From Podarcis cretensis (lineage: Eukaryota): a DNA stretch of 64,000 nucleotides. The translations under genes and the position numbers were made by a program. The stretch covers positions 29,574,001 through 29,638,000 of the forward strand of contig OX638153.1 in NCBI GenBank assembly GCA_951804945.1, read 5' to 3'. Position 1 is the first letter of the stretch; each line of letters opens with the position of its first letter. Shown piece by piece: positions 7,430-53,800 of the stretch. A model generated the notes under the pieces. That model saw only the letters and a list, made by a program, of their open reading frames with translations. It made no database searches and had not been told where the DNA came from.

Positions 7430-8224
7430 GGCCTTCTGCTGCCTCTTAAGGCTCCTCCCCTCACGACCCCTTTTCAGAGCTTGCTGCGGCTCCCGGCCCC
7501 CTAGCGCCCTTTCCCTTCTTTACAGTCTTTGCCCAGGCAGAGCAGAACCCGGGAGCTGCTCGCCCATCCCGCCTTCGCTGCTCCTTCAACGAGTTGCTGC
7601 GTCAGCGCCTTTCCTCTTTCCTCCCTCAGTTCTTTTGTTTATTCTCCTTTAGCTTTTATTCCTTTTTTTGGGGGGGGGAGAGGGAACACACCAAACACTA
7701 CAAAAGCATATAACGATCTTCTTCCTATCCATATTCACTCAGAAATAAATCCCACTGAATTCAAAGGGATTCCTTCCCCCCCACCCCGCACTCCATAAGT
7801 TACGTTAGAATATTGTACAATGGAATTCGTTACGGTATTTTTAGCTTCAAGTTTTATTATAAAAGAGTCGACAAAATATAGGTAATTTTTTAAAAAAAAT
7901 ATATAAAGGTGGGCACGTCAGAAAAATTGTGGGGGGGGCGTCACGTGACTGCGGACTCCGCAACTTAGCCGCCTCGTCATTTCACCCCCGCCCGTGCGCG
8001 CTCGGCGTCACGTGATCCAGTTTGTTGTTGTTGCGGCCCTACGCTGGGCGGCTGCCCGCGTGGGCGTCGACGGGGTCACGTGACGTGTTTAAATCTGTGT
8101 GTGTGTGAGAGTGAGAGAGGTGCGGGAGGGGGGGGCTGTCTTTTCCGTCTACGGGGAAAGGTGGGGGGTGAGAGCGAGCGGGCGGAGAGAGAGAGAGGGA
8201 GGGAGTAGTTGCTCCTTCTCCAAG
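7430..8224 (+). promoter_or_regulatory. SIRT1 CpG-island promoter and 5'UTR (possibly bidirectional with DNAJC12)
   Basis: CpG-rich. GTCACGTGAY at 7940-7949, 8007-8016 and 8075-8084; TATA-like TTTAAA at 8088-8093; YY1-like CAAGATGGCGG over the start codon. Confidence 0.8.
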
Positions 8225-11200
8225 ATGGCGGACGGGGAGACGCCGCTCCTCCAGTGCCGGAGCGGCGGCCGCGGCAGCAACGGCGGTGGCAGCGGCGTTG
8301 TGCCAGGCGCCTCCGAGAGCCCGGAGCCAGCTGTGAAGCGTCAACGCCGGGGCTCCACTGACAGCGCCGGCCGGGCCTGTTCGGCCGCGAAGGAAGCCGG
8401 CGGAGAGGCGGAGGCGCCTCTTTACATAGGAAGCGCCGCCGCCGAGGAGGCCCTGGCGGAGGAGGAAGAGGTCGCTGCTGCTGCTGCTGCTTCCTCTGGC
8501 GACAGCGAGCTGGGAGAGGCCTCGGCAGCGGTGGGAGAAAGAGGAGGAGAGGAAGGCTGGAGCTGCGCTGGGCTGAGGCGGTGGGGCCTGGCCCGAGAAG
8601 AGCCGCCGCCGCCGCCGCCGCCGCCACTACTGCCGCAGTTGTCGCCGCCGCCGCCGCCGCCGCTGCCGAGGTGGTGGCCGAGCCAAGGGGAGGGAGCAGA
8701 GGCGGCGCCCGCCGGAGACGCAGCGGAGGCGGCCATTGGCTGCGGGGCGGCGCAGTGTTCGAACGGCGCTGCGGAGGCGGCCGCGCGCCCAGGTGAGGAG
8801 CCGCTCCAGAGGCGGAGGGGGCGGCAGGTGGGCGCAGGGCAGCGATCGGGTCACGGAGGAGGAGCAGCATCAGCACCGCTCGGCCTGCTCTTTAGCGGCA
8901 CGGGAGGGAGGGAGGGAGTCGCAGGGAGAGACCCGAGACCACCGGCATCCTCTTCTAACCCCAGCTCAATGGGATTCGCGTTGTCGGGGCTGGGGGAAGT
9001 CAAGGCACTGCTTAGTCCTTCTCCCTCCCGCGATCTTCAAGAGCCGAAGGCCTTGGGAAATCCTCCTAAACACAGTCTTAATGTTTGCAGTAATCTGTGG
9101 CTCCTCCCATCCACTTGTCACCGCGGGAGCGGGTGGGGTGGGGGAAGAGAGCTGGGAGAAGGCGACTAAACGTGCAGCCTGGTCCTATACAAGTTTGCTC
9201 TAACTGCATATAACTTGCAGCCTTGAACAGCAGCCTGTGCCTGGGAGGATAAAATTGGCGGAAGCCAGTTTCGCTTGGGCTGACGGTTTGCTTAGTAGCA
9301 AAAAGCTAGTAATCCCATGCAGAATACAGGGATCTTGGGGAAGCTAGGTTTTTCTGACTTCTATGGCAAGTGCATCATGTGGAGGCGGAGCACCCTCTTC
9401 TATGCAACTCTTGAAGATACAGAAGTTAAAGCAAATCTTACACATACATTATTTCGATGGTACCTAAAGCTTACATAAATGAGTATGAATGATGTAAACA
9501 TGATTAAATCCCAGTTTAAAAGGAATCTTGTTACTTCTTGTAGGTGAAGTACAGCATAACTTGTTCTAAATGTGATGGCACTACTTTTATCTGATAATGG
9601 TTTTTCTCTGTTTAATGTCTTTCAGACAATATGTTTTTTAATGATGAAATAATTGCAAACGGCTTCCATTCCTGTGAGAGTGATGAAGATGATAGAGCCT
9701 CTCATGCAAGCTCCAGTGATTGGACTCCAAGGCCACGTATAGGTAGATATTTACAATTCAATATAGGGGTTCCAGTTAAATATCTTGTAAGATTACATCT
9801 TCATTCTTGCTTTTATTTCCTTGGGCAAGTCATATCTTTATATTTGTGACACTGTTGTCTTTCCTTCATGTAAGTCTGAACTCTGAGTGGTTTGTTGAGG
9901 TGCCTATATATTTTGCTGCTTATCTTGGCATGAGTAGGGGTTGCACCTTGGAAGAATAGCTGAGTGGCAAATTCCCCTGCTTTTATCCTTCCGTATTACC
10001 ACCTCTACACTGCGCAGAACTATGGAGTGCTCTATCTCTTTCTTCAGCTCTAAATCCGGAATTGGCAATTGAGGGTAATCTGAGGTGCAAGCCTGAGCAG
10101 TGTGTATGGAGGTCCTGGCTGCCCAGACAACAAGACACTCTCTCTCACTTGCTCATGTGGTCCAAAGAAAAGGAAAGCAATACATTTGGCACCAGCTTGG
10201 TGGCAGGAGTTGCGGGAAGGAGGCATACAAGACACCATCCAAGTGCCTTAGGGACTCCACTCCTAATTTTTGCAGGGTTTACTCCCATGCCTTTTCTTCT
10301 CCCAAAGATGTCCTGCAAGGCAGCAGGTACAGATTGTTCCTCAGGGTTTACTCCCAAAGCCTTTTCACATTACATATAGTTCTGTGATTTTTCCCCACCG
10401 ATTTTTTTCTTTGTTTTATGCAGCAACTGAGGTTGCAATCTGAATTGGGGATTAATTCTACCCTACCACTTGAATTGCTTTCTTACTGAAAATAATCTCC
10501 TTAGCTGCTTTTACCCCACAAAGGAAAAAAGATATGGGAACCAATTATCCTATTCATGGGATTAATACAAAAATGCTGTGGTTATTTGTTGCTCACAGGA
10601 TGCCTCACCCATGATGCCAATGCATGCCCTTTTGTGTGCAGTACATTACACATTTTTCAGATTGGTATGCTACTTGCTCTGTTGAAAATGTGATAAACAA
10701 AAAATGTTGCAGAATTTTCTCCATCAGTTGAATATTCTGCATCAGCCAGATGACAATTGCTTTATTTTCTATTACAGGCCCATACACTTTTGTCCAACAA
10801 CATCTCATGCTAGGCACAGATCCACGTGCAATTCTGAAAGACTTGTTGCCAGAAACTATTCCGCCTCCTGAACTTGATGACATGACATTATGGCAAATTG
10901 TTATTAATATCCTGTCAGAACCACCTAAAAGAAAAAAGAGAAAAGATATCAATACAATAGAGGATGCTGTGAAACTACTACAAGAGTGCAAAAAAATAAT
11001 TGTCTTAACAGGAGCTGGGGTATGTATCTAATGTTGAATAGAATAAGTAGAACATTATTTGAGATTTTAATTATTCTGATGCAAGTATGTGGATCATGTG
11101 AATGGATTGCTCTCTGCTGTGCTACAGTAATGCTAGAGTCGCTCCTGGGCAGATGTTTTTTTATATCCAACACAAGCAAGGGATGGTTGTCCATATCACA

Positions 11201-14200
11201 AAGCTCACAGTTCTTAAGAAAATATTTATATCCCATGTGCCCAAATATGCTGAAGGAAAGATACCTGTGTGCCCTAGTGGAATGTGAATGTTGAAGCAAA
11301 TGCAATGATTTTAAGACCTTTCTTCACGGGCAACAATTCTGTACTGCGGCCCAGATTAAACTAGTTGCACTTGTGGGAGCCAGTGCAACAAGTGCAATTT
11401 GTGTCCTCCCCCCCCCCAATCAGGTTTGGAGGGGTGGGAGAACTGCTAGAACAGTGTGCGGGGGGGGGGGGGAGAGCATTCATCCAAACAAGCAGACAGA
11501 GTCTCATTGTGCATCCTGCAGAGCACCTGAGCAAAGGGATGAGCAACTAACTTCTATCACTAGCACGAAGGAACATTTAATTCCCTTGCTCTGATACTGT
11601 AAGCACTGACCTTTCGTTGAGGCACTAGCAGCTACCCTTGTTTCAGTAGTTCAAGTATATGCAAGTGAATCTTCAAAGGCTGATAGAAAGGGTAGGGAAA
11701 GTAACTAATTTCTGGTAACCCACTACTGTTGGCCAGCCTCCAGGAGACTGAGGCAGCAGTGTATTTTCCAAACCATTGTAGAAATCATAGAGTTGGACAG
11801 GACTAGTAAAGCATTTGACAGAGTTTTAGGAAGTAAGTGGTAGAACTTGGCAGCGATGCTCATTTGCATCATATACAATGACTTTAGTTGGAGTGCAAGC
11901 AGAAGCTTGTTCTGCAGCAACTAATGTCCTGAATAGAATCACACTACCTACTTTCATTTGTCTGGAACCAAGATGATACCTGTTAAGAAAAGTCTTATTT
12001 GATTTTGAAGTGACTGAACTGAAACGTTAATTAACGCTGCAGTTCTCTAGCCTGTATGCATATTGCGTTGGATTTTCATAAGTAGTTTTGCTATAGTTGT
12101 AAGTGGAATTTCCTAATCTGCAGTTTTTTTAGGTACCTGAATAATGGATAGTTCTAAAAAAAGTAATATTTTATTTGCCAAAAGAAAATAAGCAAACAGT
12201 TGGGGGGGGGTGACTATTTTTAGTTAATTATTTAGTTAGTTATTAAAGGCATTTCTAAACTGCTCACTGTTTTAAAAAATCTCTAAACATTAAATTTTAC
12301 AGTGTATAGTCCAAATATTTTACAGCAACAAATGTTGTTATAGTATACAATTGATCTTTATTATGGTATGTAACCTATTTCAGGTATCTGTTTCTTGTGG
12401 AATCCCTGACTTCAGATCAAGAGATGGTATCTATGCACGTCTTGCAGTAGATTTCCCAGATCTTCCTGATCCTCAAGCAATGTTTGATATTGATTACTTC
12501 AGGAAAGATCCAAGGCCATTTTTTAAGTTTGCAAAGGTGCCTTTTCTCTCTTGCTTGTATGAAAAACAGATACGTTTAAACAACCTATAATCTTTATGTA
12601 TCTAAAACAAAGACAGTTTTCCTCAACGCTGTTATGCCCTTACATGAGCAAAGGGGCACATTGATTATTGCACCAATATAAAATCGCAAATAATGATGTC
12701 ATGCTTGCTTTGTAGTGTGTTTGAGTAATAATCAGTGCTCTCTTTCTCTTGTAGTGGTTCTTATTTTTATGGGATATAAAGAAACTAAAGAAGCCAAAGT
12801 TTATAGAGTAACTATCACTGTTGCTTCTCCTATTAAGAAGGCACTACTCTTTTTTTTTTTACTCGATACAGTAGCGATATGCTTATAACAAATAGGTGGT
12901 CAAATGTGTGAGTGAACTTTAGCTTACACAGTAGAACTTCCATCTTCCTCTCCAGCCCTCCTCCTGCCTCTGGTCCCCCCCCCCCCAAAAAAAAAGTTTA
13001 AGATGATCTCCTTCCCTACTCTGAATCAGATTTTGATGGTGTCTGGATGGGAAGAGGAAAGTGAAATACTTCAGTGTGGCTAAAAGTCTATTCCACTCAT
13101 AGACAGTTTTGAATACAATCAAATGTTTAAATGCCATTATGATTTATGACTTTACAATAGCATTGCATACACTGAATCTTGTTTGATGGTGGCGGGTGGG
13201 GAAAACTAATTTTCTGACAGTGTATTTATATGCCAAGCTACAGCATAAATATTTTTGGCTTAAACTTAAGGCATCCACCGAAAAGGCAATAATATTGTTT
13301 TGGAAGCTTTCCACTTTATGAACAAATTTTATTCTTTCATAAAATTAATAACATAATGAATGAAAATAGCACAAGCTAAGTTGACCAACTTGAATACATA
13401 CAATGCTAGTAAAATGTAAAATCAAAAGCTTTTTCAGTGGGTTTCAATTATATGCGATTTCACTGATGCACGTGGTGCCTCGGAACATAGCTCCCACATA
13501 AAAGGGAGCTGCCTGTATACTTTTTTTAATGCAACCTATAATTCCTTTGGGGATCTTTCTGGATGTAAGATTGTGGATGCTAAATAGCTTTTCTTTTCAT
13601 TCATACCTTTTAATGATCAACACTGATCAACAGTTGTAATGATCAACATTTTTGGGGCTTGGAAGATACACTTTTTCAGAGGAGTGGGTTGTATTAGGGT
13701 TGTGCGCATGCAGAGTACTGCTCACAAAGTTGGACTTCCCCTTTCTCTCTTCTCCCTGTGTTGCCTCAAAGTACCCTTTGAAGGCTCCTGCAGCCCTCTG
13801 GAGCAGATTTTGAGAATCCCTGGAGGTCTTCAAAGGAAAGGATAGGAGGGGGAAGTTCCGTTGCATGTGGAAGTATGCTGTGCTATCAGAACAGCAGCAC
13901 TGGACATGACTCCATATTTAAGCAGTCATAGCATGTCATATGTTCAATGGGGGGTGGCAGGAGATGGTGTATACATTTCCCCCATTTAAGTTAATGATGT
14001 ATGTTAGTAGTATTTTCTCCAAGCTGAAAGGTTAACACAAGTTACGATTAGTTTAAAAAAATGTTGGTTCTAGTAAGCAATAGCTAATGTATGGTGGCTG
14101 ATCTTTAAACAAAAACTGAAATGTGATATTAGCAAAATTTATTTTTCGCTTTTTTAAAAATTCTACAGGAAATATATCCTGGACAGTTTCAACCATCTCT

Positions 14201-24300: not shown

Positions 24301-24447
24301 CATAGCTTCCCTTTTTTTGCGGGAAATTCCCTTATTCCAGCGCTGCTTCCCGCTGCTATCCCGGAATGTTAGATATCCTGTAGACTGTCCCCGGCACAGG
24401 TGAGGCTGCTGATCCCTTATTTTCAAATCTGAAAGTTGACAGCTATG
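24301..24447. mobile_element. hAT-type MITE nested in an L2-like 3' tail repeat
   Basis: TIR CATAGCT/AGCTATG; 8-bp TSD GGCTGGGG/TGCTGGGG. Excising it restores CCCAGAGCGGCTGGGGCAGCCCAG, similar to the repeat at about 39260. Confidence 0.7.
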
Positions 24448-24569
24448 TGCTGGGGCAGCCCAGTAAGATGTATGGGGTATAAATAGTAAAATTATCATTA
24501 TGCAATGGGACGACCCTATTGTCATCAGAGAACTGTTGGCAGGTATGGGGTGATGGGAGTTGTGCTCTT

Positions 24570-25300
24570 CACGATGGGGGGAGCACCAAGCTGGCGAAAA
24601 CTTGGGGGGGGGAGGCCCATGAATGACCCACAGCCTTGAGCCTGCGGGCGCGCAGCCCCGCTTCGGGCTGGTGTTGACGGCGGTCGCCCGCTGCCCCTCC
24701 TTCTGGTGGGAGTGGCCGCCTGCCGTGAGCGCCGGCGACAGCTGCCGGGCTGGCTGACCTTGCTCCGCCGTCGGATCCCCGCATCTCCGCCATGGCGACC
24801 AGGCTGCTGCTCCTCCGGCTCTTCCCGCGAGCTGTGCGGGCCACGGCGCCCGCCTCCATCCGAGCCATGAGCGCCGGGGGTGCGTACAGGCGGCGGCGGC
24901 GGGGCTGAGCGCGTTCTGCGGGGCTTGCGAGAGCGCGCTCCGGGGGAGCGAGGGGCTGCTTTTGCCTGGCGCTCGCAGACCTCGGCAAGGTGACCTCAAC
25001 TCAAACCAAAGCGCGGCACCCGTCCAGGAGGCGCCTCCTCGGGGTTATGAGGACGTGCTGGGCGCTCGAGGGCCCGTCCCCCCGGGGCGCTCCTGCCTGC
25101 TTTCCCACCGAGAAACCAAAGCCCACCCCCTACCCCGGGCGTATGGCAGGCAAGAGCCGCCCCTGGCACAAGGCCCCTTTGCGTCCCTCTTCTTGGAGGG
25201 AATCACGTGCCCTGTGGGGAAGACACGTGGAACAGCCCCCCATAAATGGCCTTTGAAGTGAGGCAGGCAATAGTCTGTTTGCAGAGCTGCACGTGAGTTT
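24570..25300 (+). promoter_or_regulatory. CpG-island promoter and intron 1 start of the COX5B-like gene
   Basis: CpG-rich; Kozak CCGCCATGG; ERR-type half site TGACCTTG at 24755-24762; CACGTG at 25204, 25224 and 25290. Confidence 0.7.
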
Positions 25301-28300
25301 TGGGGGAGGGGGAGGGAGTCACCATTGGCGTCCAGCGGGCTAATGATTAATAATTATTATCTAAACTTGACAATTACCCAAAGCAAAAGGGTTGTTTGTT
25401 TGTTTTCTGCTGAGGTTCTGTTGTAACTCTCCTTTGACCTGTGGGTGGAAGCCAAAGGTTCCGAAATGCCCTTCTCACCACAATTCTGCCACCCAGCCCC
25501 CTTCCTTGGTTAACTCTGCTGGTGTCCAGGGGATATGGAGTAATTTAGGAGTATGCTTTCCTACCACCCCACTTAGGTAAAGGTAAAGGCACCCCTGACC
25601 ATTAGGTCCAGTCGTGACTGACTCTGGGGTTGTGGCGCTCATCTCGCTTTATTCGCTGAGGGAGCTGGCATACAGCTTCCAGATCATGTGGCCAGCATGA
25701 AGCTAAGCCGCTTCTGGCGAACCAGAGCAGTGCATGGAAACACCATTTACCTTCCCACCCAGTGGCGTAGCGTGGGTTGTCAGCACCCGGGGCAAGGCAA
25801 GGCAAGTAATTTGCGCCCCCTAACCCATGGATTTGCACCCCCTAACCCTAACCCCCAGATGTTGTGCCCGGTGCGGCCGGCCCCCCCTGCACCCCCCATG
25901 CTACGCCACTGTTCCCACCGGAGCAGTGCCTATTTATCTACTTGCACTTTGACGTGCTTTCAAACTGCTAGGTTGGCAGCAGCAGGGACCGAGCAACGGG
26001 AGCTCACGGGGATTCAAACCGCCGACCTTCTGATCAGCAAGTCCTAGGCTCTGTGGTTTAACCCACAGCACCACCAGCGTCCCACCACCCCACTTACCAA
26101 ATTGCAAACATCATGTCCCTGAACAGAACCTGAAGGCAATAGCCCAGTAACTGGGATTCAATGGAATACTTTCTCTGAATCTAGAAGTGCCATATTACCG
26201 CTGTAACTAGTGATGGAAATACGCTCCCTTTTCTGCACTGTTTCTAGCTCTACAACATCCTTATTGAGATGAGTCAGCTAAAGCTGTACACAACATTCTA
26301 AATGTGGCAACACCATAGATCACAGAATCAGGATTGTAGAGTTAGAAGGGACAACGTAGTCCAACCTGCTGCAATGCAGGAAATCTTTGCCCAAGGTGGG
26401 GCTCGAACCAGCGACCCTGAGATTAAGATTTGCATGCTCTACCGATTAAACTATAATGTATTTTGTAAGGACATTGTGGTACTCAGAGTTTTCATTTCAG
26501 TCCATTTCGTTATCATCTGAAGCTGTCTTATTCACTGCAACGTACTGTTAATTTCATTGAGCTCTCTGCCATGACCCCCAGGTTCCCAATTAGACCCTGC
26601 TAGATCCCATCTGATCAGTGTACTTAGTAGGGGTGGTGGTAAAGAATATGTAGTGCATCCTAAAATATCACCTTCAAACCAGTATGATTTAGAAGTGCTT
26701 AATTTTATCAGGATTGTTTTGTTCTCCACATCTTCCTGGGGTTCATTTAGTTGGTTCAACATTTAATATTAAATTGCTACATCCTCCAAGGGCCCATGAA
26801 GCTCAGATTTTGAAAATTAAAACAAATTTTAAATTTGCCTGAAGCCAAAACAGAAAAGAGTGGGAAATACACAGGACAGCTGAGTTTGGTGGCTCCTTCA
26901 AGAGAAGTGGTATACCCAGTAGGTGGGAATCTGCATGGAATTCTATTTTCACGCTCTTTTTCATTACTATCTCAGTACACCTTGTCAAACCATAACGCAG
27001 GTGCCCTAAAGTGGGGATTCTGTAAAGCAGGAATAGACAACATGGTGCCTTCCGGTTGTTTTCAACTACAACTACCATAATCCCTTATCATTGGCAATGC
27101 CGCATGGGGCTGTTGGGAATTATAGTCCAAAGTATCTGGAGCGCATCAAGTTGGCTGTCCTTGATTTAATGTGTGAATTACAGGGTTTTAAAAGACTTTT
27201 TTTTTCCAGCCAGTGGCCTGGGAAGCATAGTACCTGCTCAGCAGTTAAGGCTAGATATACAGTATCTAAGCATGCAAACTGGTGTGTAAAAGAAGAGTTG
27301 GAAACTATGACAGCAGCATATTCCAGTTTGGTGCTAGAATTTTTCCTACAGCAGTTATTAAGAGGAATTTCCTACAGCAGTTATTAAGAGGAATTTCCTA
27401 CAGCAGTTATTAAGAGGAAGAGGCACTGATGGCAGGGATTTTGCTCATATAGAATCCTCTCACACATGGCCTGTTAGCTACCCAGAGGCGGGGGGCATAC
27501 CTAGTGATTGGATAGGTTGGCTCAGAGTGGCTGGGAGCCTGCCAATCCTCAGGCCACTCCTCCACTGCTCTGGGTGGCTGGGTGAGATGTGCAGGCTCCT
27601 CTTGGTGCCAGGATGAAGAACTCAGATTGCTGCAGCCCTGAGGGCCCCCCTCCCCAGTCGGCTGGCAGCGCTATTAGAAGTGTGAGTAGGGCACCCAGCA
27701 GGACTCAGAGGAACAAAACACAGGGAGAGGGCAAGAGTGGAATGGAGGCAGAAGGGAAAGAGGAAGACGTCAGGGAGATGGACTAATGGAGATGGTGGGG
27801 AGGCAGAGCAGACTCAACCCCAGTGTATGTGGAGGAAGTCACTGGCTGAGTGCAAAAGGCAATGAAAAGCAACCATTTTTAGTTTCTGGTCCATGGTCTC
27901 TCCCAACTTTGGTGTTGCCAAAACAGCTCCTTGCCAACAGCGCAAGGGACAGGGGAGGCAGCAGACTGTCTCTCCTTGCTGTAGACACAAGGGAGCCTAG
28001 TTATGCCTCTGTCCAAAGGTACAGTGGTACCTCTGGGTGTGGACACAATCCGTTCTGGGGTGCCGTTCGCACCCCGGGCAGTCTGCAACCAGAGCGGTGC
28101 TTCTACACATGTGCGAAGCGCAATAGAGCGCTTCTGCACATGTGCGAATGCTTCTGCACATAGGCGAACTGCGCAGAACACTTCTGCGCGTGCGGAGAAA
28201 CCCGTAAGTAAATACTTCCGGGTTTGTTGCATTCTTAACCCGAAAAAACACAACATGAAGCGTTCACAAGAAGAGGTATGACTGTAGTTGTTATCATCAA

Positions 28301-30262
28301 TGCCAACAAAGCAGAATGTAGAATGACAGAGAGAGAATCTGGATCAGAGCATAAAGAAAGATGGCAATTACAAAAGAAAGAGCTAGCTGCAATTGTTATG
28401 AAGGCCTGAGATTTGCATACTTAAGCCCATGCTGACCCTACATCTAACAGTTGCTTTAAATAGGTTTAAGTTTGCATATTAGTGCATAGTGTCAGATAGG
28501 TAATCAAATCTGGGGGTTTCCATTGTTCTTTTCAGGTATCCCTACAGATGAAGAGCAAGCTACTGGGCTTGAAATGAAAAGTATGCAAGCCTTGAAAAGA
28601 GGGGAAGTAAGTTTAAAGCAATTGAAGAGTTTCACTGAAATATGATTTTGTTTGGTTTCACACTCTTGACTAATAACTATCACCATCAGTGGAAGATTAA
28701 AAAAAAAAATTTAACCTCTAACCCAACCCATCTCCCATTGCTTTTGTTGACTACTCCATTGGCTGTGGTCTCATCATGCACTGTGACTTAGAGGTCTCAA
28801 GTCTTTACAGGCCCTGGAGATTTTTCTCAGCATCACTTAATTTACACATCAAACTGAATTTAAAAGCAATTAAATTCATGCAGATGAACCATGGTTGGAG
28901 TGGAATACAGCCTTAAACTCTTACTTCAGTCACCCAAGATTTATAACTTTTTTTCTTTTCCACTGTATTCTAGTTCTTTAAAAATCAACCCTTGGTCATT
29001 CAGTAAAGGAAAAACATGACAGGAGGGGATATATAACAACTGTGCTGCTAACTAACACATTTCTTCTTTATAAAGGATCCATACAACATCTTGAAGCCCA
29101 AGAAATATCCAGGAACCAGAGAAGAGCCTCATATTGTTCCATCAATTGGGGACAAGAGACTAGTGGGTTGTATCTGTAGGTATCAGAATTTGTTTGACTT
29201 CAGTACATACTGTCTTCCTGATTCTCATATTGCATAGTCTTGTAAAACCTATTAAGCACCAGACATTTCAGGTGCAATCCCGTCCCACCAAGGTGAAGCA
29301 ATCGTCTTTTGATTCAAACAATAGAGCCTTTCCCCTTCAACACATCCCTCAGTGCATGCATGCACTCAAAGTGGGATAATTATAGAGGCAGCATGCTCAG
29401 ACTTCCCATTCCCTGTCCTGGGCTGCCTGTGTGCATGCACAAGGGGAAGAAGCCACTGGACCCAAGGGGAGTTGAGGAGGGTAAGAGTGGGTGCAAGTAT
29501 TTCATCCATATCTTACAAATTACCTACAGCGAAATTTATGTTGTAATAGTGTTGATTTTTAACAGTGGTTTCTAGTTGAGTTGGGTGTGAGTGCTTTAAG
29601 AAATTTTGAAAATACTGTATAGGCATACTTATTGACCCTGTTACAAATGGAGCAGCATGTAAAATATGCAAAGCCTGAGTCTTTGGTAGAAGATGCATAC
29701 TATATTAAGATACAAGCATAGCATTTTCTATGATTCTTGCTTTGAAACACCAAGGAGCTAATGGCTCTTTCCCAGGTTGTTTTCTCTTTCTGGCCTTGTT
29801 TTCTTGTCCGACACCAACAGTCAGCAGGGTGACAAGTTAAACATTTCCTGCCAATTCTCCCCCACATTCATGCATTTGGGAGTCTCTTTCCCAGAGTCCC
29901 TGTGTAGTTATGTCCTATGACAACTACACAAAAGATGCAGCAACATGCAAAACTACTTTCCATTGATATGGTAGAAAAGATGCCATAATCAACTTCAAAA
30001 ATAGACCAAATTCAAAGGCTGCTGTTCCGTTATTCTAGGGAACCAAAATTGTTGTCAAATGTAACTGGCCCTTCTCTAAAGTCCTTGAAGCTTTCTAAAA
30101 TGTGGGTTCTTAATTAACAGATACTGGATTTTTTTCTTTCTTTTTGCAGGTGAGGAAGATAACTCCACTATTATTTGGTTCTGGGTACACAAAGGAGACA
30201 GCCACCGTTGCCCTCAGTGTGGGTCTTACTACAAGCTAACTCATTATGAACTCCCCCACTGA
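24792..30262 (+). CDS. COX5B: Cytochrome c oxidase subunit 5B-like, mitochondrial (COX5B paralogue, cox5b2-type); join(24792-24879,28536-28606,29076-29175,30150-30262), 123 aa
   Basis: Spliced protein [123 protein letters not shown]. It has an Arg-rich presequence, [11 protein letters not shown] and four Zn-ligand Cys. GT-AG introns in phases 1,0,1. Confidence 0.95.
25576..26083 (+). mobile_element. Sauria SINE interrupted by a hAT MITE
   Basis: GGTAAAGGTAAAGGCACCCCTGACCATTAGGTCCAGTCG head; TSD ACCACCCCACTTA (25563-25575 / 26084-26096). Confidence 0.85.
25760..25911. mobile_element. hAT (Tip100-like) MITE, 152 bp, nested in the Sauria SINE
   Basis: 17-bp TIR CAGTGGCGTAGCRTGGG; perfect 8-bp TSD TTCCCACC (25752-25759 / 25912-25919). 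Confidence 0.9.
26313..26450 (-). mobile_element. tRNA-Lys-derived SINE with CR1-like tail
   Basis: Minus strand TCGGTAGAGCATG..CTTAATCTCAGGGTC..GGTTCGAGCCCCAC resembles tRNA-Lys(CTT), followed by a CCCTTCTAACTCTACAATCCTGATTC CR1-type tail. Confidence 0.7.
27342..27419. repeat. Perfect tandem repeat, 3 x 26 bp
   Basis: Unit TTTCCTACAGCAGTTATTAAGAGGAA repeated three times. Confidence 0.95.
28022..28284. mobile_element. Tc1/pogo-type MITE
   Basis: TA-CAGTGGTACCTC ... GAGGTATGACTG-TA; related copy in opposite orientation at 45601-45838. Confidence 0.8.
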
Positions 30263-30315
30263 GAACTGATACCAAGAAAAGGTGTTTTTTCTTTCTTTCT
30301 TTCATTGTAGACTTA

Positions 30316-30321
30316 AATAAA
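30316..30321 (+). terminator. Polyadenylation signal of the COX5B-like gene
   Basis: AATAAA 53 nt after the TGA stop; a short 3'UTR is typical of COX subunit mRNAs. Confidence 0.7.
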
Positions 30322-30644
30322 TCTGCCTGCCTTTAGCTACATCAACCTTGGTTACTTTATTGCACCTGCATCTAAAAGCTGAAACAGAAATACAATACAA
30401 GAGCTCTGAACACTATCCCTTTTTTGGGATCAAAGCAGCCAAAGTGGGTCTGGTTTGGATTATGGCTGCAGCTGTGCTGTTTTTTCTATTTTTAAAATCA
30501 CTCCCACCCTCCTATAGCTGCTATTTACCCCATTAGAGGAAACATACAAGTGCCTATATGCTGGTGGATGAGGTACAATTAGGACCTTGATAGCAATGCA
30601 TGCACCCTCATTGCTCATAATTTACCACCTCAAGTGTAATAACA

Positions 30645-30708
30645 GCATGTGTGTGTGTGTGTGTGCGCGTGCGCGTGCGCGCGCACGCACACACACACAC
30701 ACACACAC
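30645..30708. repeat. Compound (GT)n(GC)n(CA)n quasi-palindromic microsatellite
   Basis: 64-bp alternating purine/pyrimidine tract with complementary GT and CA arms. Confidence 0.9.
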
Positions 30709-31079
30709 CTACCTGGCTTCATTCTTAAAACTCCTGCTGACACACAAAATATTCCTTCAAAAATCTCATCATTTTCACGGGAACTACTTCAACAAGTTAT
30801 TTGTGAACTACAAAAATGGAGATGATCCAAACTGCAACCAACAGAATGGTAGAAGAACCTAGCTTCACATGGCATGCTTGGTCAAAGTAACAGACGTCTA
30901 GGCTGAGCATTATTACAATTTAACACATGGTTATGGAACAAACATCTGCAAGGGAAGTAGTGATATGTTGGGAACTTAGTAGAAAGGAAAGACAACTTAC
31001 TTAACAAGGTATATGCAAGGAAGAACTCATTCATTGTAACGAGTAACTTGGGTTACTGCTTTTCCCACTTCCATTATAA

Positions 31080-32885: not shown

Positions 32886-35800
32886 TTATACTAAATTGAA
32901 ACCTTCATTGTGATCAATAGCTTGGATCAGCTTAGATCTGAGTATTTCTTTATCTGTATATTTTGGAAGATCAAGAAGATTAAAACATGTGTGAGACACT
33001 GGGAGATACTCATCACCACCTCCAGTCGGCTGAATGACAAGACTAAGGCTCTTCATCCCAAGAATAGGAATACGATCACTGCCTGTCAAAAATACTACCA
33101 AGAAAATATAAATAAGTAAGAAGCCTGGGTACAAAGGCCAAAAATGTAGTGCTGTGCTACAATTTTCATTTTACTTTTTAGACTGATATAGCCCAAATCT
33201 AAAATTCTGAAAATGTAAGGCAGTTATAGCCATATGAAATTGTTTATAGTTCATTGTTTTTGCTCAAAGTTATTGTAAACAAATTTTATAGTTTAGAGAA
33301 CTTATTTATTATATTTGTTCATTGCTTCACCCAGAGGTTCTTTGGGGGAACAATATAACTAAAAACAGAAACTCCATATAACACCCCCCGAGTCCAACCC
33401 TAAAAAACAAGTGTGGTGTGAAGTGATTTAATTAAGTTAACAGTTTCTCTTGGCTAAATAAATAATTATTTGCTTGGAAACAGGTGTGCTTACACCTAAA
33501 GCAAGGTTTTCAACCTTTAATGAATCACATCAAATCAAGCAGAGCAGCTACATGGGTGCTTTCAACTGGTATGATATGTTTCACCAGAAACAGCTGCAGT
33601 TAATCTATTCATATATGTGCCTGTATGCATGTTAGGGTGCTCATACATTCAAAACTCAGGGCGGAATCCAGACTTAAGTTAACTTAGGTCCTACTGAAAT
33701 CAATGAAGTGAGCCAAGTCATGATGCATGTTGTGCTTCATTCCCATTGAAACCAGGCAAAAAAAGTCTGGATCCAACATTTGAAACATAAGTGAATAAGC
33801 AACTTGCAGACCTAATCCTAGTAATTGTTGTTTATTTCTGTTTAAAATATTCATTTTTTTAAAAAGTGAAAATGCAAATTCTCCCTTGGACAGAATCCAA
33901 AGTCAACTTAGCATTTTAACCATTCAAAAAAACCAAACCGAACACTAACACTTGGGCTTAGCACAACATGTTAACCAGGTCTACACTGTAGTTTAGCATT
34001 ACGTGCATGAACAGCACTGAGCCTCATGCTCACATTCATAGGTGCCAACTCCCTGGGGCCCTGGGTGCTTGAGCACCCACAAAATTCCCATGAAGGGGGC
34101 AGGCACCCACAAATTTTGGTGCCAGGGCCAAGCTGGCACTCCTGCCTGCATTTCCCCCTAACCTCCAGTCCTGAAGTGATTAGAAGAAACTGCTGCTGCC
34201 GCTCTTAAACTGAAGTTCTTACTTCCAAATTTGGGGACAGATTACACTATAACTTGATAACAAGACAGGATCATAAACTGCACATTGATCCTGGCTTGTC
34301 TGAACACGCCACAGCTAAACTAACCACAGTTCCAAGTTTGGATGTAGGTTGTTTAAAACCATAGGTAGATCCTTCCAATAGCCAGCTATGCTGAAGGAAG
34401 CTCCACAGGCCCCAGGCTCACTGCTGCTTAGCATATAGTGCTAAATTATGACCTAGTGTTACATGAAAAATAAGCCAGTGGTAACAATTGCTCTAGACAA
34501 AACAAAAAAATTCCTTCCAGTAGCACCTTAAAGACCAACTAAGTTAGTTCTTGGTATGAGCTTTCGTGTGCATGCACACTTCTTCAGATACACTGAAACA
34601 GAAGTTTCCAGACCCTTCTATATAGTGAGAAGGTGGGGAGGGGTATTACTCAGAAGGGTGGTGGGAATGGGTGATTGGCAGATAGCTGTGATGAGCCTGT
34701 TGACGACTCTTAACGACTGCAATAGGTCTTACAGGAAAAAGCAAGGGGTGAGAAGGTGAAAAATGGCTTTGCCATGTATAATGAGATAAGAATCCAAGGT
34801 CTTTGTTCAGACCAGGACTCTCCATGGTTTTAAGTTTGGTGATAAGTTGCAATTCAGCAGCTTCTCTTTCCAGTCTATTTCTGAAATTCCTTTGTAGTAA
34901 AACAGCTACCTTGAGATCTTGTATAGAATGTCCTGGGAGATTGAAGTGTTCTCCTACTGGTTTCTCTGTCTTGTGATTCCTGATGTCTGATTTATGTCCG
35001 TTTATTCTTTGGCGTAAGGTCTGGCCTGTTTGTCCAATATAGAGAGCTGAAGGACACTGTTGGCATTTGATTGCATACACAATGTTAGACGATGAGCAAT
35101 TAAATAGTCCCAAGATGGTATGTGTGATGTTGTTGGGGCCAGTAATGGTGTTGTCCGGGTGTATGTGGCAGCAAAGTTGGCATCTGGGTTTATTGCAGGC
35201 TCTGGTGCCAGTGTCCGTGTTAGGTCTGGTTGTAGTATTATTGTGGGTTAGGAGTTGTTTAAGATTGGGTGGCTGTCTGTAGGCAATGAAAGGTCTTCCT
35301 CCCAGAGCTTGAGAAAGAGAACTGTCATTGTCCAGGAGAGGTTGTCAGAGATCTAACTTAGTTGGTCTTTAAGGTGCTACTGGAAGGAATTTTTTTGTTT
35401 TGACTATGGCAGACCAACACGGCTACCTATCTGTAATTACTCTAGAGTTCCTATTTAGATTTCTTATTTTCTTACACAGTTTTGTATACTTACATAAAAA
35501 CTGTTTCTTCTTCTCCAGTGGTAGCTCATGAAAAACTTCCCAGAACATTTTAATTGTTGGATTCTCTGCCCAATATTCTCCTTTGTATTGAGTATTCTAA
35601 GAACAACAAATCAAAATCACAATATATCCCCCTCAAATTTACAAATAAAATGTTGTATATTGAACAAACAAAAATACCTATGCGTACACGTATTTATAGA
35701 ATTTTATGTATTTTAGTGTTTTTCTACATAATACAGAAAAGCTCTATTTTGGACAATCGCTTAATTATACAGGATTCTTTAGTGTTCAGTTGTTGCTAAT

Positions 35801-50800: not shown

Positions 50801-53800
50801 TCCTGTGTGTGATATAGAAGGCATTTTTATTTTATTTGCTTGAAAAAAATTATATTCTGCACTTCATCCAGGGTGATGAATAAAACATAAAATATACTGT
50901 GATGAAACAAAGCAGATAAAAATACATCAAATTTAAAACGGTTATAAAATTATATTTAAAGAATGCAGACAGTTCCAATAAAACTTTGTATTTCTATGAA
51001 TTCATACTTCCAGTTTACAGCTTTCCCTAACTTAAAATAAGGATTGGCTCAGTCACTAAACTCTAAATATTATGTATGCACACCAATCCTCAAAAGGAAA
51101 GATTGCTTTGTTTAGGAACTGTGAGTTTTGCTTTATCAGCTAACAAAATGAAGCTTAATTTTCTCTAAACAACTTACAAATAACATGTTTCAGATACTTT
51201 AACACCAAATCCGAAAGCATATTGACCACTTAAGATATGGAAAGAAGTTTTATCTTAAGATACAATAATACACAACTGAAGCTACACTAGTTGCACTATA
51301 TTTTAAAGAATACTCTAGTGAAGCAAATGGAAAGCAACACTAATACAAAGTCAAAGTTCCAGGTATCAGATTCAGCTCTAAGCACTTTACTGAGTAAACA
51401 CAGAAGCCAGCTTATGGATTTTAAAAATGAACTACCTGTAGAGTAACGTAATGTGAAAAGCTTTGGTCTCCACCAGAGAAAATCCTATGTACATAATAAT
51501 ATTCTTCACGATCTATAATTAAAATAGCATGATGTTAACATCAAGAAGAAAGCTTGAAAAGAATTTGTCTTTTATTTAGGTAGGAATGAAATTGAGGGAT
51601 GCCACTTTTGCAAGAACATCAGGTAACTTTTGCCAATAGCAGGTCTGCATACTAGCATTTTACACCACACACAGCAACCTTCCTTTTTGAATCACATTCA
51701 CAGTTATTGCTCTGCACTCTCATAGATCAACAAGTTCATTCAGAGAAAAACTAGAGTTGACTTGTATGGGAAATGGTGCATTTTGAGGGGGCGGGGTAAG
51801 GATTTTTATTCATTTTCATCTTTAAACAGTTTACCATGGTTGCATTGAGATATATCTTTGTTTACATTAGAGCATATCATGCTGTGATTATATAAAATTA
51901 AAGTTAAAAGCAAAACAACACAACAATAAACAGATACACATTTCTGAATATATTAACAAAGTTGTGTCAGTGTATATACCAAAATTATTAGTTATTATGT
52001 GTATTTGCTTAGATCACTGATCAAAAGTCAAAGGTATATTGTATCAACAACTATCAGAATTTATAGGAATTTATGGGAAGGGGGGAAAATAATAAAACTT
52101 GTACTTCACACGCACCAGACTGCGCTGTAAACTATGGGTGCTGTTCTACATTATGTCTCATTATTTCTGTAATCAATAAAGTCACACCAGACTGCAAAAA
52201 TCTGTCGTGTTTATTTTGGCTTCTTGCTACTTTTAATTTTGCTCTCAGCTTTTCCAATAATGCTGATTGCCTAATTGCATTATATCATTGGTTCATAGTT
52301 AATAACTGTAACGGTTTCCATGTCCTGGCAATGGTTGTTCTTGCAGCAGTTACTATGATATGTTAGGGGTCCTTGTTTCCAATTTGCAACATATTGGTGC
52401 AGCATTTATTGCTTCTACAGTAAACACAAAAATCTCATGAGGCATAGATGCAGTACTAACAAATCCAGTCCCTTACCCATTATCACAATATAACTATTCT
52501 TAAAATAATTCCCCCCTAACACTCCCAAAATATATATACAACTAAAGCAAGCATTATTACCTGAATTTAGTGGGATGTCTCCGTTATAAGGAAGCCAGTT
52601 TCCTTTCACTGGGAAAGGACTTTTCCTGTTACTGGTTGATCCCATGCCCAACTGTCCATTGCCTCCAAGACCAAAAGAATAAATTCTTCCAGTGGAAGGG
52701 ACAAATGCAGATGTGTGCTGCCTAGTGCAAAGAAAGAATAGAAATTCAACAAGTAAGAAACTGAGAATGCTGTAGTATATTACATATGCTATATGTGACT
52801 TATCTATCCCCAATAACTTAAGAGAAGACAGTTGCAATGTTCTGTTCAGGGTATTAAGAGGGAGCGGCCTCTAAACCGCATGGAACTTGTAATGCATTGA
52901 GATGGAATGCTACTGTGCCTATGGAACAGCCTTCATGCCAATCCAATTAAGTAATTCACCGGGCTGCATAAACTAATGTGTTATCTAACTTACAGCAGTC
53001 TTTTCTTTATAATGGCGCATAACTGGGGTGCCCAACAAGATTTTGAGAATACCACAGCAGCTAGAGGTAAACTTACTTCTTACACTTTTCAAGTTGCTAA
53101 ACACCCCATAAAATTATTCCATTCTGTGGTCTTACCTTCCACAAGCAATCTGTGTGACAATGCTCCCCATAAGTTCAAAAACTTTTCTTGGGTTTATCTC
53201 ATGGCCAGTAGAGTTATGACCTAATTGCCCATAGCCTCCAGCTCCAAAAGTAAACACCCCACCTTCCTAAAAAACATTTGAAGTTAGAATACTTTTTATG
53301 TACAAAAAATAATAGTTACAACTGTGGAGAAGCACTAGATATTTGCCCTACACATATAACAAATAAAGTGTCTTTACAAACATGCTTATCTTCATAGATA
53401 TATAGTTTAGTCTCTGCACAACATCCTCACTGTGTAAGAGTATAAACAATAAAATAAATCCACAGTCCTGTACACCAAAAATAAATCACATTAACTTTTT
53501 TTTTAAAAAAAAACACCATTGATTTTTAATTTCAAGTAACAAAAAATACCCATGCAAAAAAATCATGTAATCTTTAGCTGAGTTCCAATTTAAAAACACA
53601 TGGTTGATTTAAAAAAATCCTAAATTAGTGGTAATATCAGACTGATAAACAAGATAATGTAAAATGCTATTAGTGGACATTGCGCCCTGCCCAATATAGT
53701 AGGACTACTATTTTCACTTTCATATTTATTTGTTCCAAAATGACTTCAACTGCAGAGCAAGAATTGCTCAAGAGAACAGAAAGTGCATTTCTCCACATTA

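Follow-up and report, generated by a model that had tools for sequence, protein, structure and literature searches.

The subject of this report is a gene for subunit 5B of cytochrome c oxidase (COX5B; the enzyme is respiratory complex IV) that lies in a 64,000-nucleotide stretch of the genome of the lizard Podarcis cretensis (assembly GCA_951804945.1, contig OX638153.1, positions 29,574,001 to 29,638,000 of the forward strand). This whole stretch, numbered from its first letter, is called the window below. Four exons with GT-AG borders, located on the + strand between 24792 and 30262, join into one COX5B precursor of 123 amino acids. The best explanation of the data is that this is the lizard's second, functional COX5B gene, of the COX5B-2 type, the one that RefSeq names 'COX5B, mitochondrial-like' (here, the 'like' gene, as distinct from the canonical COX5B). 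We hold with high confidence that it is a real, expressed and constrained gene standing beside the canonical one. An earlier note, made from the letters of the window alone, had presented the gene as hidden, and this description has to be given up: RefSeq already annotates it in Lacerta, Podarcis, Zootoca, Elgaria, Varanus, turtles and amphibians, and one of the RefSeq proteins is identical to the product of the window gene, which is therefore already known and not new as a gene.

Structure, transcripts and constraint

The translations of the four exons contribute 29, 23, 33 and 36 residues; together with two residues whose codons are divided by introns, they account for 372 nucleotides, that is, 123 codons and a TGA stop. 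The divided codons are a Gly codon split G/GT between exons 1 and 2 and a Cys codon split T/GT between exons 3 and 4. The three introns, of 3656, 469 and 974 nucleotides, begin with the donors GTGCGT, GTAAGT and GTAGGT and finish with the acceptors ttttcAG, ataaAG and ttgcAG, respectively, each acceptor having a run of pyrimidines on its 5' side. The coding part of exon 1 (24792..24879, ending in phase 1 at the GTGCGT donor) holds the initiator Met and a predicted mitochondrial presequence: residues 1 to 29 include five Arg or Lys and no Asp or Glu, are rich in Ala and Leu as well as in Arg, and stop immediately short of the conserved beginning of the mature chain, a prediction made from composition only. 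Exon 2 (28536..28606) encodes the conserved N-terminus of mature 5B. Exon 3 (29076..29175) runs into the first zinc knuckle, GCIC, the last Cys of which is the one split by the intron, and the coding part of exon 4 (30150..30262) supplies the second knuckle, RCPQCG, the C-terminus and the TGA. The four zinc-ligand cysteines (85, 87, 107 and 110, in the arrangement CxC...CxxC) are all present and are invariant in every group consensus.

The exons were searched singly, and full-length comparisons were made through P0164, a database protein that matches all the exon translations. PF01215, the Pfam profile for COX5B, matches exons 2, 3 and 4 collinearly, at profile positions 30-47, 59-86 and 90-119; exon 4, with 32.2 bits, is the sole exon above the 31-bit cut-off. 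PF01215.25 is also the precomputed domain in close relatives of the identical database protein. Exon 3 aligns from end to end with residues 60-92 of the solved mammalian COX5B precursors in the PDB (E 2e-10), and exon 4 does the same with residues 94-129 (E 4e-15), so that the exon borders fall at the ends of the alignments.

The 5' end of the gene is occupied by a CpG-island promoter (24600..25199, + strand) that takes in the start of transcription, exon 1 and the 5' part of intron 1. Over these 600 nucleotides the GC fraction is 0.69-0.74 and the observed-to-expected ratio of CpG 0.69-0.96, against 0.40 and 0.32 in the whole window. The 5' untranslated region (UTR) extends at least over 24706..24791, the spliced contigs beginning at 24706 (run X9) and 24759 (run X12); no upstream ATG occurs in this contig-covered segment, and the start codon stands in the context ccgccATGG, with a G at -3 and a G at +4. 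An exact-motif scan of 24400-24900 found no NRF1, GABP or Sp1 core. Its sole hits were a TATA-like hexamer at 24478 and, at the start codon, ATGGCG; no inference was drawn from it. At the other end of the gene, the 3' UTR (30263..30335) carries AATAAA at 30316-30321, and the transcript ends near 30327-30335. All that the earlier note had read in the letters is there, namely the four GT-AG exons with their uninterrupted 123-residue COX5B product, a presequence-like leader, four zinc cysteines (GCIC, RCPQC), the CpG island, the Kozak context and the AATAAA; translations, splice sites, PF01215 matches and RNA-type contigs bear out the exon structure.

These contigs come from four sequencing runs, belonging to four studies and carrying two organism labels, and were placed on 24700-30400; they derive from related species and not from that of the window. 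Their run type, entered as 'RNA?', is a guess, and they were taken as RNA since the contigs skip introns. Sixteen small runs, which include the four placed here, contain 8-18% of the sampled words of the stretch, approximately the share expected of exons plus a repeat, and four large DNA runs under another organism label contain 82-93%. Contigs that skip introns, in runs holding about one-tenth of the locus, form the pattern expected of RNA. The joint that removes intron 1 (24878/9 to 28535/6) was found in runs X9 and X12, and those that remove intron 2 (28606 to 29076) and intron 3 (29175 to 30150) in all four runs, every time with GT..AG borders. Single contigs of 504 nucleotides (X9) and 534 nucleotides (X12) span the 5' UTR, the four exons and the 3' UTR; they begin at 24706 or 24759 and finish at 30281 or 30327, and a contig of run X1 reaches 30335. 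In the same runs, contig depth amounts to 55-675 over exons versus 2-15 over introns. The COX5B gene is spliced and expressed, giving a polyadenylated mRNA from a housekeeping-type CpG promoter.

The same contigs make it possible to compare the rates of change of exons and introns. Relative to run X1, the introns show 108 differences over about 2430 nucleotides (4.4%), versus 2 differences in 284 nucleotides (~0.7%) for the coding sequence of exons 2 to 4 and none for the 3' UTR, which makes the exons about six-fold more conserved than the introns. At the intron rate, 12 to 13 differences would be expected in exons 2 to 4 and two were seen, which shows these exons to be constrained already at the level of the DNA. 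A C at 28574, present in all four runs, converts Met 43 into Leu, which is the Podarcis state. At residues 43 and 59 the window agrees with Lacerta agilis and Zootoca in having Met and Ile, respectively, and Podarcis proteins have Leu 43 and Val 59. These Met/Leu and Ile/Val replacements, both conservative, are the sole differences from Podarcis in exons 2 to 4, where no synonymous change was seen.

Two COX5B genes and the age of their duplication

A profile-free search seeded with exon 4 yielded 48 representatives, and a word search, run with the genuine COX5B portion of a representative from Anolis, yielded 121 named vertebrate COX5B proteins. P0164 is XP_033004837.1 of Lacerta agilis, 'cytochrome c oxidase subunit 5B, mitochondrial-like', a protein of 123 amino acids and a member of the Podarcis cluster. 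The exon translations occur in it exactly, at positions 1, 31, 54 and 88, and both split-codon residues agree, so that the window product is identical to it, exon by exon, over 123 residues. The 'like' protein of Podarcis muralis (XP_028585251.1) differs from the window product by two residues, and that of Zootoca vivipara (XP_034994622.1) has the same mature part. Lacerta agilis also possesses a canonical COX5B, XP_033014899.1, of 132 amino acids. The two genes lie on different chromosome-sized contigs (95.9 Mb for the 'like' gene, 84.1 Mb for the canonical one), and their products are 72% identical in the mature part, the N-terminal third of which is different enough to distinguish the two. 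Both kinds are likewise found in Zootoca vivipara, Podarcis muralis, Elgaria and Phrynosoma, and, by name and sequence, in Varanus komodoensis, Lerista, a turtle (Carettochelys), a caecilian (Rhinatrema) and three frogs (Rhinophrynus, Pelodytes and Discoglossus), where in each species (Varanus to Discoglossus) the two genes are on contigs of different size. The pair is thus present in at least 11 species beyond Lacerta agilis. The earlier note was right to call the gene a second COX5B made by duplication at the DNA level and not a retrocopy: the introns are kept and a canonical copy coexists in Lacerta agilis.

An identical canonical-type protein of 132 amino acids (P0170) is recorded on five Podarcis contigs, from two P. 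lilfordi accessions, P. muralis and P. raffonei, and an 88-residue 'like' fragment (P0171) on a 127-Mb contig of P. raffonei. Podarcis has at least two COX5B copies of the canonical type. The records in question may represent young duplications or retrocopies that derive from the canonical gene and have nothing to do with the old paralogue.

Both paralogues have diverged at an equal rate across the same species pairs. When Lacerta is compared in the mature part with Elgaria, Varanus, Lerista, Rhinatrema and Rhinophrynus, identity is 84, 77, 82, 76 and 77% for the 'like' protein versus 83, 76, 86, 77 and 76% for the canonical one. The exception is a turtle pair, with 68% for 'like' versus 83% for canonical. 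Squamate 'like' proteins have a set of fixed features of their own, namely a Glu before DPY, a second knuckle of the form HRCPQC (versus QRCPSC) and a Tyr-Tyr after the knuckle.

A maximum-likelihood (ML) tree with lamprey as its root, computed from 95 proteins and 127 alignment columns, distributes the vertebrate genes between two clades. Clade A (support 95/88, starred) joins Latimeria, Acipenser (sturgeon), Amia (bowfin) and teleost 5B1 to the canonical genes of tetrapods; the latter, from amphibians, turtles, Crocodylus, birds, squamates and mammals, form a clade of their own (99/83, starred). Clade B (92/82, unstarred) contains chimaera, sharks, teleost cox5b2 including that of zebrafish, Polypterus and the tetrapod 'like' genes, the last in well-defined subclades of frogs (99/87, starred), caecilians (100/97, starred), turtles (100/99, starred) and squamates (99/94, starred). 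Among the squamate 'like' genes the window product stands with those of the lacertids, apart from clade A and its mammalian COX5B genes, so that the tree check proposed in the earlier note came out as its author had expected, with the 'like'/cox5b2 genes. The mammalian '-like' retrocopies, among them those of cats and marsupials, are placed inside mammals, in clade A. The lungfish gene (Protopterus) and a mormyrid 'cox5b2' (Paramormyrops) pair together (97/84, starred), an implausible grouping, probably a long-branch or compositional effect that shows the limits of 127 columns.

In the approximately unbiased (AU) test, the grouping of all squamate copies as one clade, that is, a duplication confined to squamates, is rejected, with a log-likelihood difference (dlnL) of 30.3 and p 0.020. 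A strict count of discriminating columns left just 3 usable ones, and group consensus lines were used instead. The 'like'/5B2 consensus differs from that of 5B1/canonical by L versus I before VGC, I versus M after DPYS, and H versus P after KLV, and QALK is common to the 'like' and 5B2 groups. In cartilaginous fishes the searches returned a single gene type, two 'low quality' shark records being the same gene with a broken end.

The duplication is certainly older than squamates and, to judge from the tree, most likely older than the split between ray-finned and lobe-finned fishes; on balance, we lean towards the window gene being an orthologue of fish cox5b2. The earlier note's suggestion of an ancient paralogue comparable to fish and amphibian cox5b2 is supported in part: the grouping in the tree stands, while orthology to the fish gene is unproven and the AU tests leave room for younger duplications. 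A more ambitious account can be offered, tentatively and with more doubt than belief. It would date the pair COX5B-1 and COX5B-2 back to the origin of jawed or bony vertebrates (perhaps as a product of early genome duplications), with COX5B-2 anchored between SIRT1 and HERC4, kept in fishes, frogs, caecilians, turtles and squamates, lost independently in mammals and archosaurs (perhaps also in salamanders), and providing lizards with two versions of complex IV, the mix of which could be adjusted to tissue, temperature or oxygen. Little et al. 2010 reportedly counted the extra COX5b copy as a teleost feature. Were the pair as old as this account has it, the teleost cox5b1/cox5b2 pair would not be a teleost invention.

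The distribution of the 'like' gene among tetrapods is uneven. Word searches seeded with the Anolis and Chrysemys 'like' genes, which were not exhaustive and scanned no genome, returned no mammal or bird member of the group. They did return numerous proteins from birds and from mammals, as well as a single one from a crocodile, and all of these that entered the tree belong to the canonical clade. Nor did these non-exhaustive searches return a salamander 'like' gene, the two salamander proteins found being of the canonical clade. This pattern would fit loss in mammals, as the earlier note had supposed, and in archosaurs, perhaps also in salamanders. Since the 'like' gene is apparently missing in a crocodile too, a simple link with endothermy is unsupported.

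Neighbouring genes and repeats

Upstream of the COX5B gene, an open reading frame (ORF) at 12351..12587 (+ strand) corresponds to an exon of the catalytic core of SIRT1 (Pfam SIR2, E 9.6e-12; human SIRT1 in the PDB, E 8e-31); over 55 residues it hardly differs from the human protein. Further upstream, a long GC-rich open stretch at 8099-9169 (+ strand, 356 amino acids), overlapped by antisense ORFs at 8076-8876 and without a Pfam match, probably represents the first exon of SIRT1 together with its CpG island. Downstream, on the - strand, a HECT E3 ligase has its final coding exon, with the stop, at 32886..33101; the HECT C-terminal exon is also given as 32889-33170 (Pfam HECT, E 1.1e-24, profile positions 234-305 of 306). 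The catalytic-Cys motif is present in this exon, which ends at 32889 with the stop just below. An exon with RCC1 repeats lies on the same strand at 52418-52837. Together, the HECT and RCC1 exons are consistent with a HERC-type gene arranged tail to tail with the COX5B gene, the poly(A) site of which is about 2.5 kb from the 3' end of its neighbour. The earlier note had placed the COX5B gene between SIRT1 and HERC4: the SIRT1 exon upstream and a HERC-type gene downstream are there, and the latter fits HERC4 and is not told from other HERCs, the PDB containing no structure of HERC4. In the literature searched, no mention was found of COX5B or cox5b2 placed with SIRT1 or HERC4.

Intron 1 harbours a high-copy interspersed repeat resembling a short interspersed element (SINE) at 25464..26227, with no strand assigned, which is outside the gene's product. 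In all four runs its summed contig depth is 3e3 to 3e5, with many loose ends and variant internal joints. It is probably a very abundant squamate SINE transcribed within many RNAs. The repeat has a tRNA-like box, GGGATTCAAACCGCCGACC, and no tRNA was called in it by ARAGORN. The same intron carries, at about 27340-27420, three head-to-tail copies of a 26-nucleotide unit, tttcctacagcagttattaagaggaa. Just 3' of the COX5B poly(A) site, at about 30640-30700, there is a mixed (GT)n/(GC..)/(CA)n microsatellite, which reads as a Cys-Val/Ala-Arg/Thr-His repeat in an ORF at 30587-30862. Finally, an ORF of 155 amino acids with a GIY-YIG nuclease domain (34649-35113, - strand; Pfam E 3.6e-6), located in what is presumed to be an intron of the HERC-type gene, is possibly the remnant of a Penelope-like retroelement.

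Proposed working, alternatives and comparison with known systems

The most likely working of the gene can be outlined as follows. The CpG-island promoter, just 3' of SIRT1, drives a transcript of about 0.55 kb. This is spliced from the four exons and receives its poly(A) tail at a site that lies about 2.5 kb from where the opposite-strand HERC-type gene ends. The Arg-rich presequence would bring about mitochondrial import of the 123-residue precursor, and we infer that the mature protein, of about 94 residues, would bind one zinc through Cys 85, 87, 107 and 110 and occupy the matrix-side 5B position of complex IV in place of canonical 5B. The gene owes its origin to an old duplication at the DNA level, would be the tetrapod counterpart of fish cox5b2, and has been kept by squamates, turtles, frogs and caecilians. 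Two genes for one 5B position would mean two populations of complex IV. The switching between isoforms suggested in the earlier note is for now no more than a conjecture.

Several points weigh against this account. The AU test does not reject a clade of all tetrapod copies (dlnL 12.2, p 0.196) nor one of all amniote copies (dlnL 9.9, p 0.239); the alignment has just 127 columns and the 5B-2 clade is unstarred; Protopterus and Paramormyrops fall outside both paralogue clades; and the residue states common to the window gene and fish 5B2 may be ancestral rather than derived. Absence of the 'like' gene from mammals, birds and crocodiles comes from word searches that were not exhaustive, the position between SIRT1 and HERC4 is that of the gene in this window only, and the canonical copy is shown from the Lacerta agilis database record and not from the window's own assembly. 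The runs typed by guess as 'RNA?' come from related species, and their contigs carry no expression level or tissue. Membership of complex IV, for its part, is predicted from 62-72% identity to structurally solved subunits.

A first alternative is a younger duplication. In such a scheme, the pair would have arisen on the tetrapod or amniote stem, amphibians having duplicated the gene separately; the 'like' gene would not be the counterpart of fish cox5b2 and would simply have retained ancestral residues. We consider this unlikely, if worth serious attention. The two AU results leave it unrejected, support for the 5B-2 clade is just 92/82, and the searches found a single type of gene in cartilaginous fishes, so that slow evolution may be what holds that side of the tree together. 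The free ML tree is nevertheless better by 10-12 log-likelihood units, and the clade of fish 5B1 with canonical tetrapod genes is starred (95/88) and excludes the 'like' lineage. If the origin were confined to amniotes, it would moreover demand a second, parallel duplication in amphibians with the same residue states, frogs and caecilians having had to make a look-alike pair independently. A COX5B-2 gene with a role outside complex IV, for instance as a free zinc protein of the matrix or a signalling partner, is a different matter. Mammalian COX5B is said to engage in non-respiratory, signalling interactions with MAVS, and the squamate-specific changes at the second zinc knuckle (HRCPQC versus QRCPSC) and the C-terminus could be taken in that sense. 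Its conservation, however, matches that of the canonical subunit both in degree and in evenness, and the literature seen treats fish cox5b2 as a subunit of complex IV (PMC4398389), which makes this explanation improbable.

The remaining alternatives bear on whether the window holds a second functional gene at all. The gene could be a decaying or non-functional duplicate, an unprocessed pseudogene still open and transcribed by read-through. The two differences from Podarcis in exons 2 to 4 both replace residues, with no synonymous change beside them, which would suit a decaying copy, the counts being too small to weigh. Against it stand the open frame and the zinc ligands kept across squamates, turtles and amphibians, a rate of protein change equal to that of the canonical paralogue, exons about six-fold more conserved than introns, a CpG island of its own, accurate splicing, and a contig depth that is far greater over exons than over introns in the same runs. 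A pseudogene was accordingly rejected, on grounds of constraint, open frame and precise splicing, and we regard it as very improbable. A processed pseudogene or retrocopy was ruled out by the three GT-AG introns, the 5' CpG island and the spliced transcripts. It is scarcely credible, finally, that the gene should be the sole COX5B of its species, the orthologue of the mammalian gene at a different locus. No evidence was found in favour of this, and the identical protein coexists with a 132-residue canonical COX5B in Lacerta agilis, with the pair in at least 11 other species; the window gene lies outside the starred clade of mammalian genes, and shares just 72% identity in the mature part with the canonical copy of the same species. 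A sole translocated orthologue was thus discarded on the coexisting canonical copy and the position in the tree. The earlier note had itself asked whether the gene might be the only copy, might group with mammalian COX5B or might yield no spliced reads; what was found is a canonical copy, a separate place in the tree and spliced contigs.

The reading that we prefer, a second functional COX5B gene of the COX5B-2 type, has some consequences. Tetrapods other than birds and mammals have two equally constrained genes for subunit 5B, and the tree suggests that these match the two fish genes. If the old origin and the SIRT1-HERC4 anchor are true, the isoform biology of complex IV in ectothermic tetrapods would gain one more variable, and mammals and birds would represent a derived, reduced state. 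No mention of a COX5B pair in reptiles or amphibians was found in the literature searched. The gene is ordinary as a gene. It forms a tidy, probably under-described chapter in the evolution of complex IV, of modest interest, rather than anything new in kind.

The gene can be compared with systems already described. With canonical vertebrate COX5B (the human and bovine subunit Vb, PDB 1OCC chain F), the window product has in common the PF01215 domain, the mature length, the CxC...CxxC arrangement and the start of the mature protein, and it is 62% identical in the mature part to the canonical COX5B of horse and birds. It differs from the canonical protein of Lacerta agilis (XP_033014899.1) by its length, 123 versus 132 amino acids, and its shorter presequence, from canonical COX5B in general by a second knuckle CPQC in place of CPSC, and from the canonical squamate copies by a C-terminal His, which it keeps and they do not. 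In fish, COX5b1 and COX5b2 are cited as 'conserved vertebrate paralogs' (PMC4398389). Zebrafish cox5b2 (P0173) and the shark 'subunit 5B2' belong to one clade with the window gene, at a support of 92/82 that does not statistically secure orthology; the window product, teleost cox5b2 and shark 5B2 all have L before VGC, QALK, SIL-KPK and H after KLV, and the window product is 70% identical to zebrafish 5B2 and 63% to a loach 5B1. In mammals, processed pseudogenes and retrocopies of COX5B likewise add COX5B-like sequences outside the main locus, and some of them bear the annotation 'mitochondrial-like'. Unlike these, the window gene has three introns at the positions of the family, a CpG-island promoter of its own and a lineage older than squamates.

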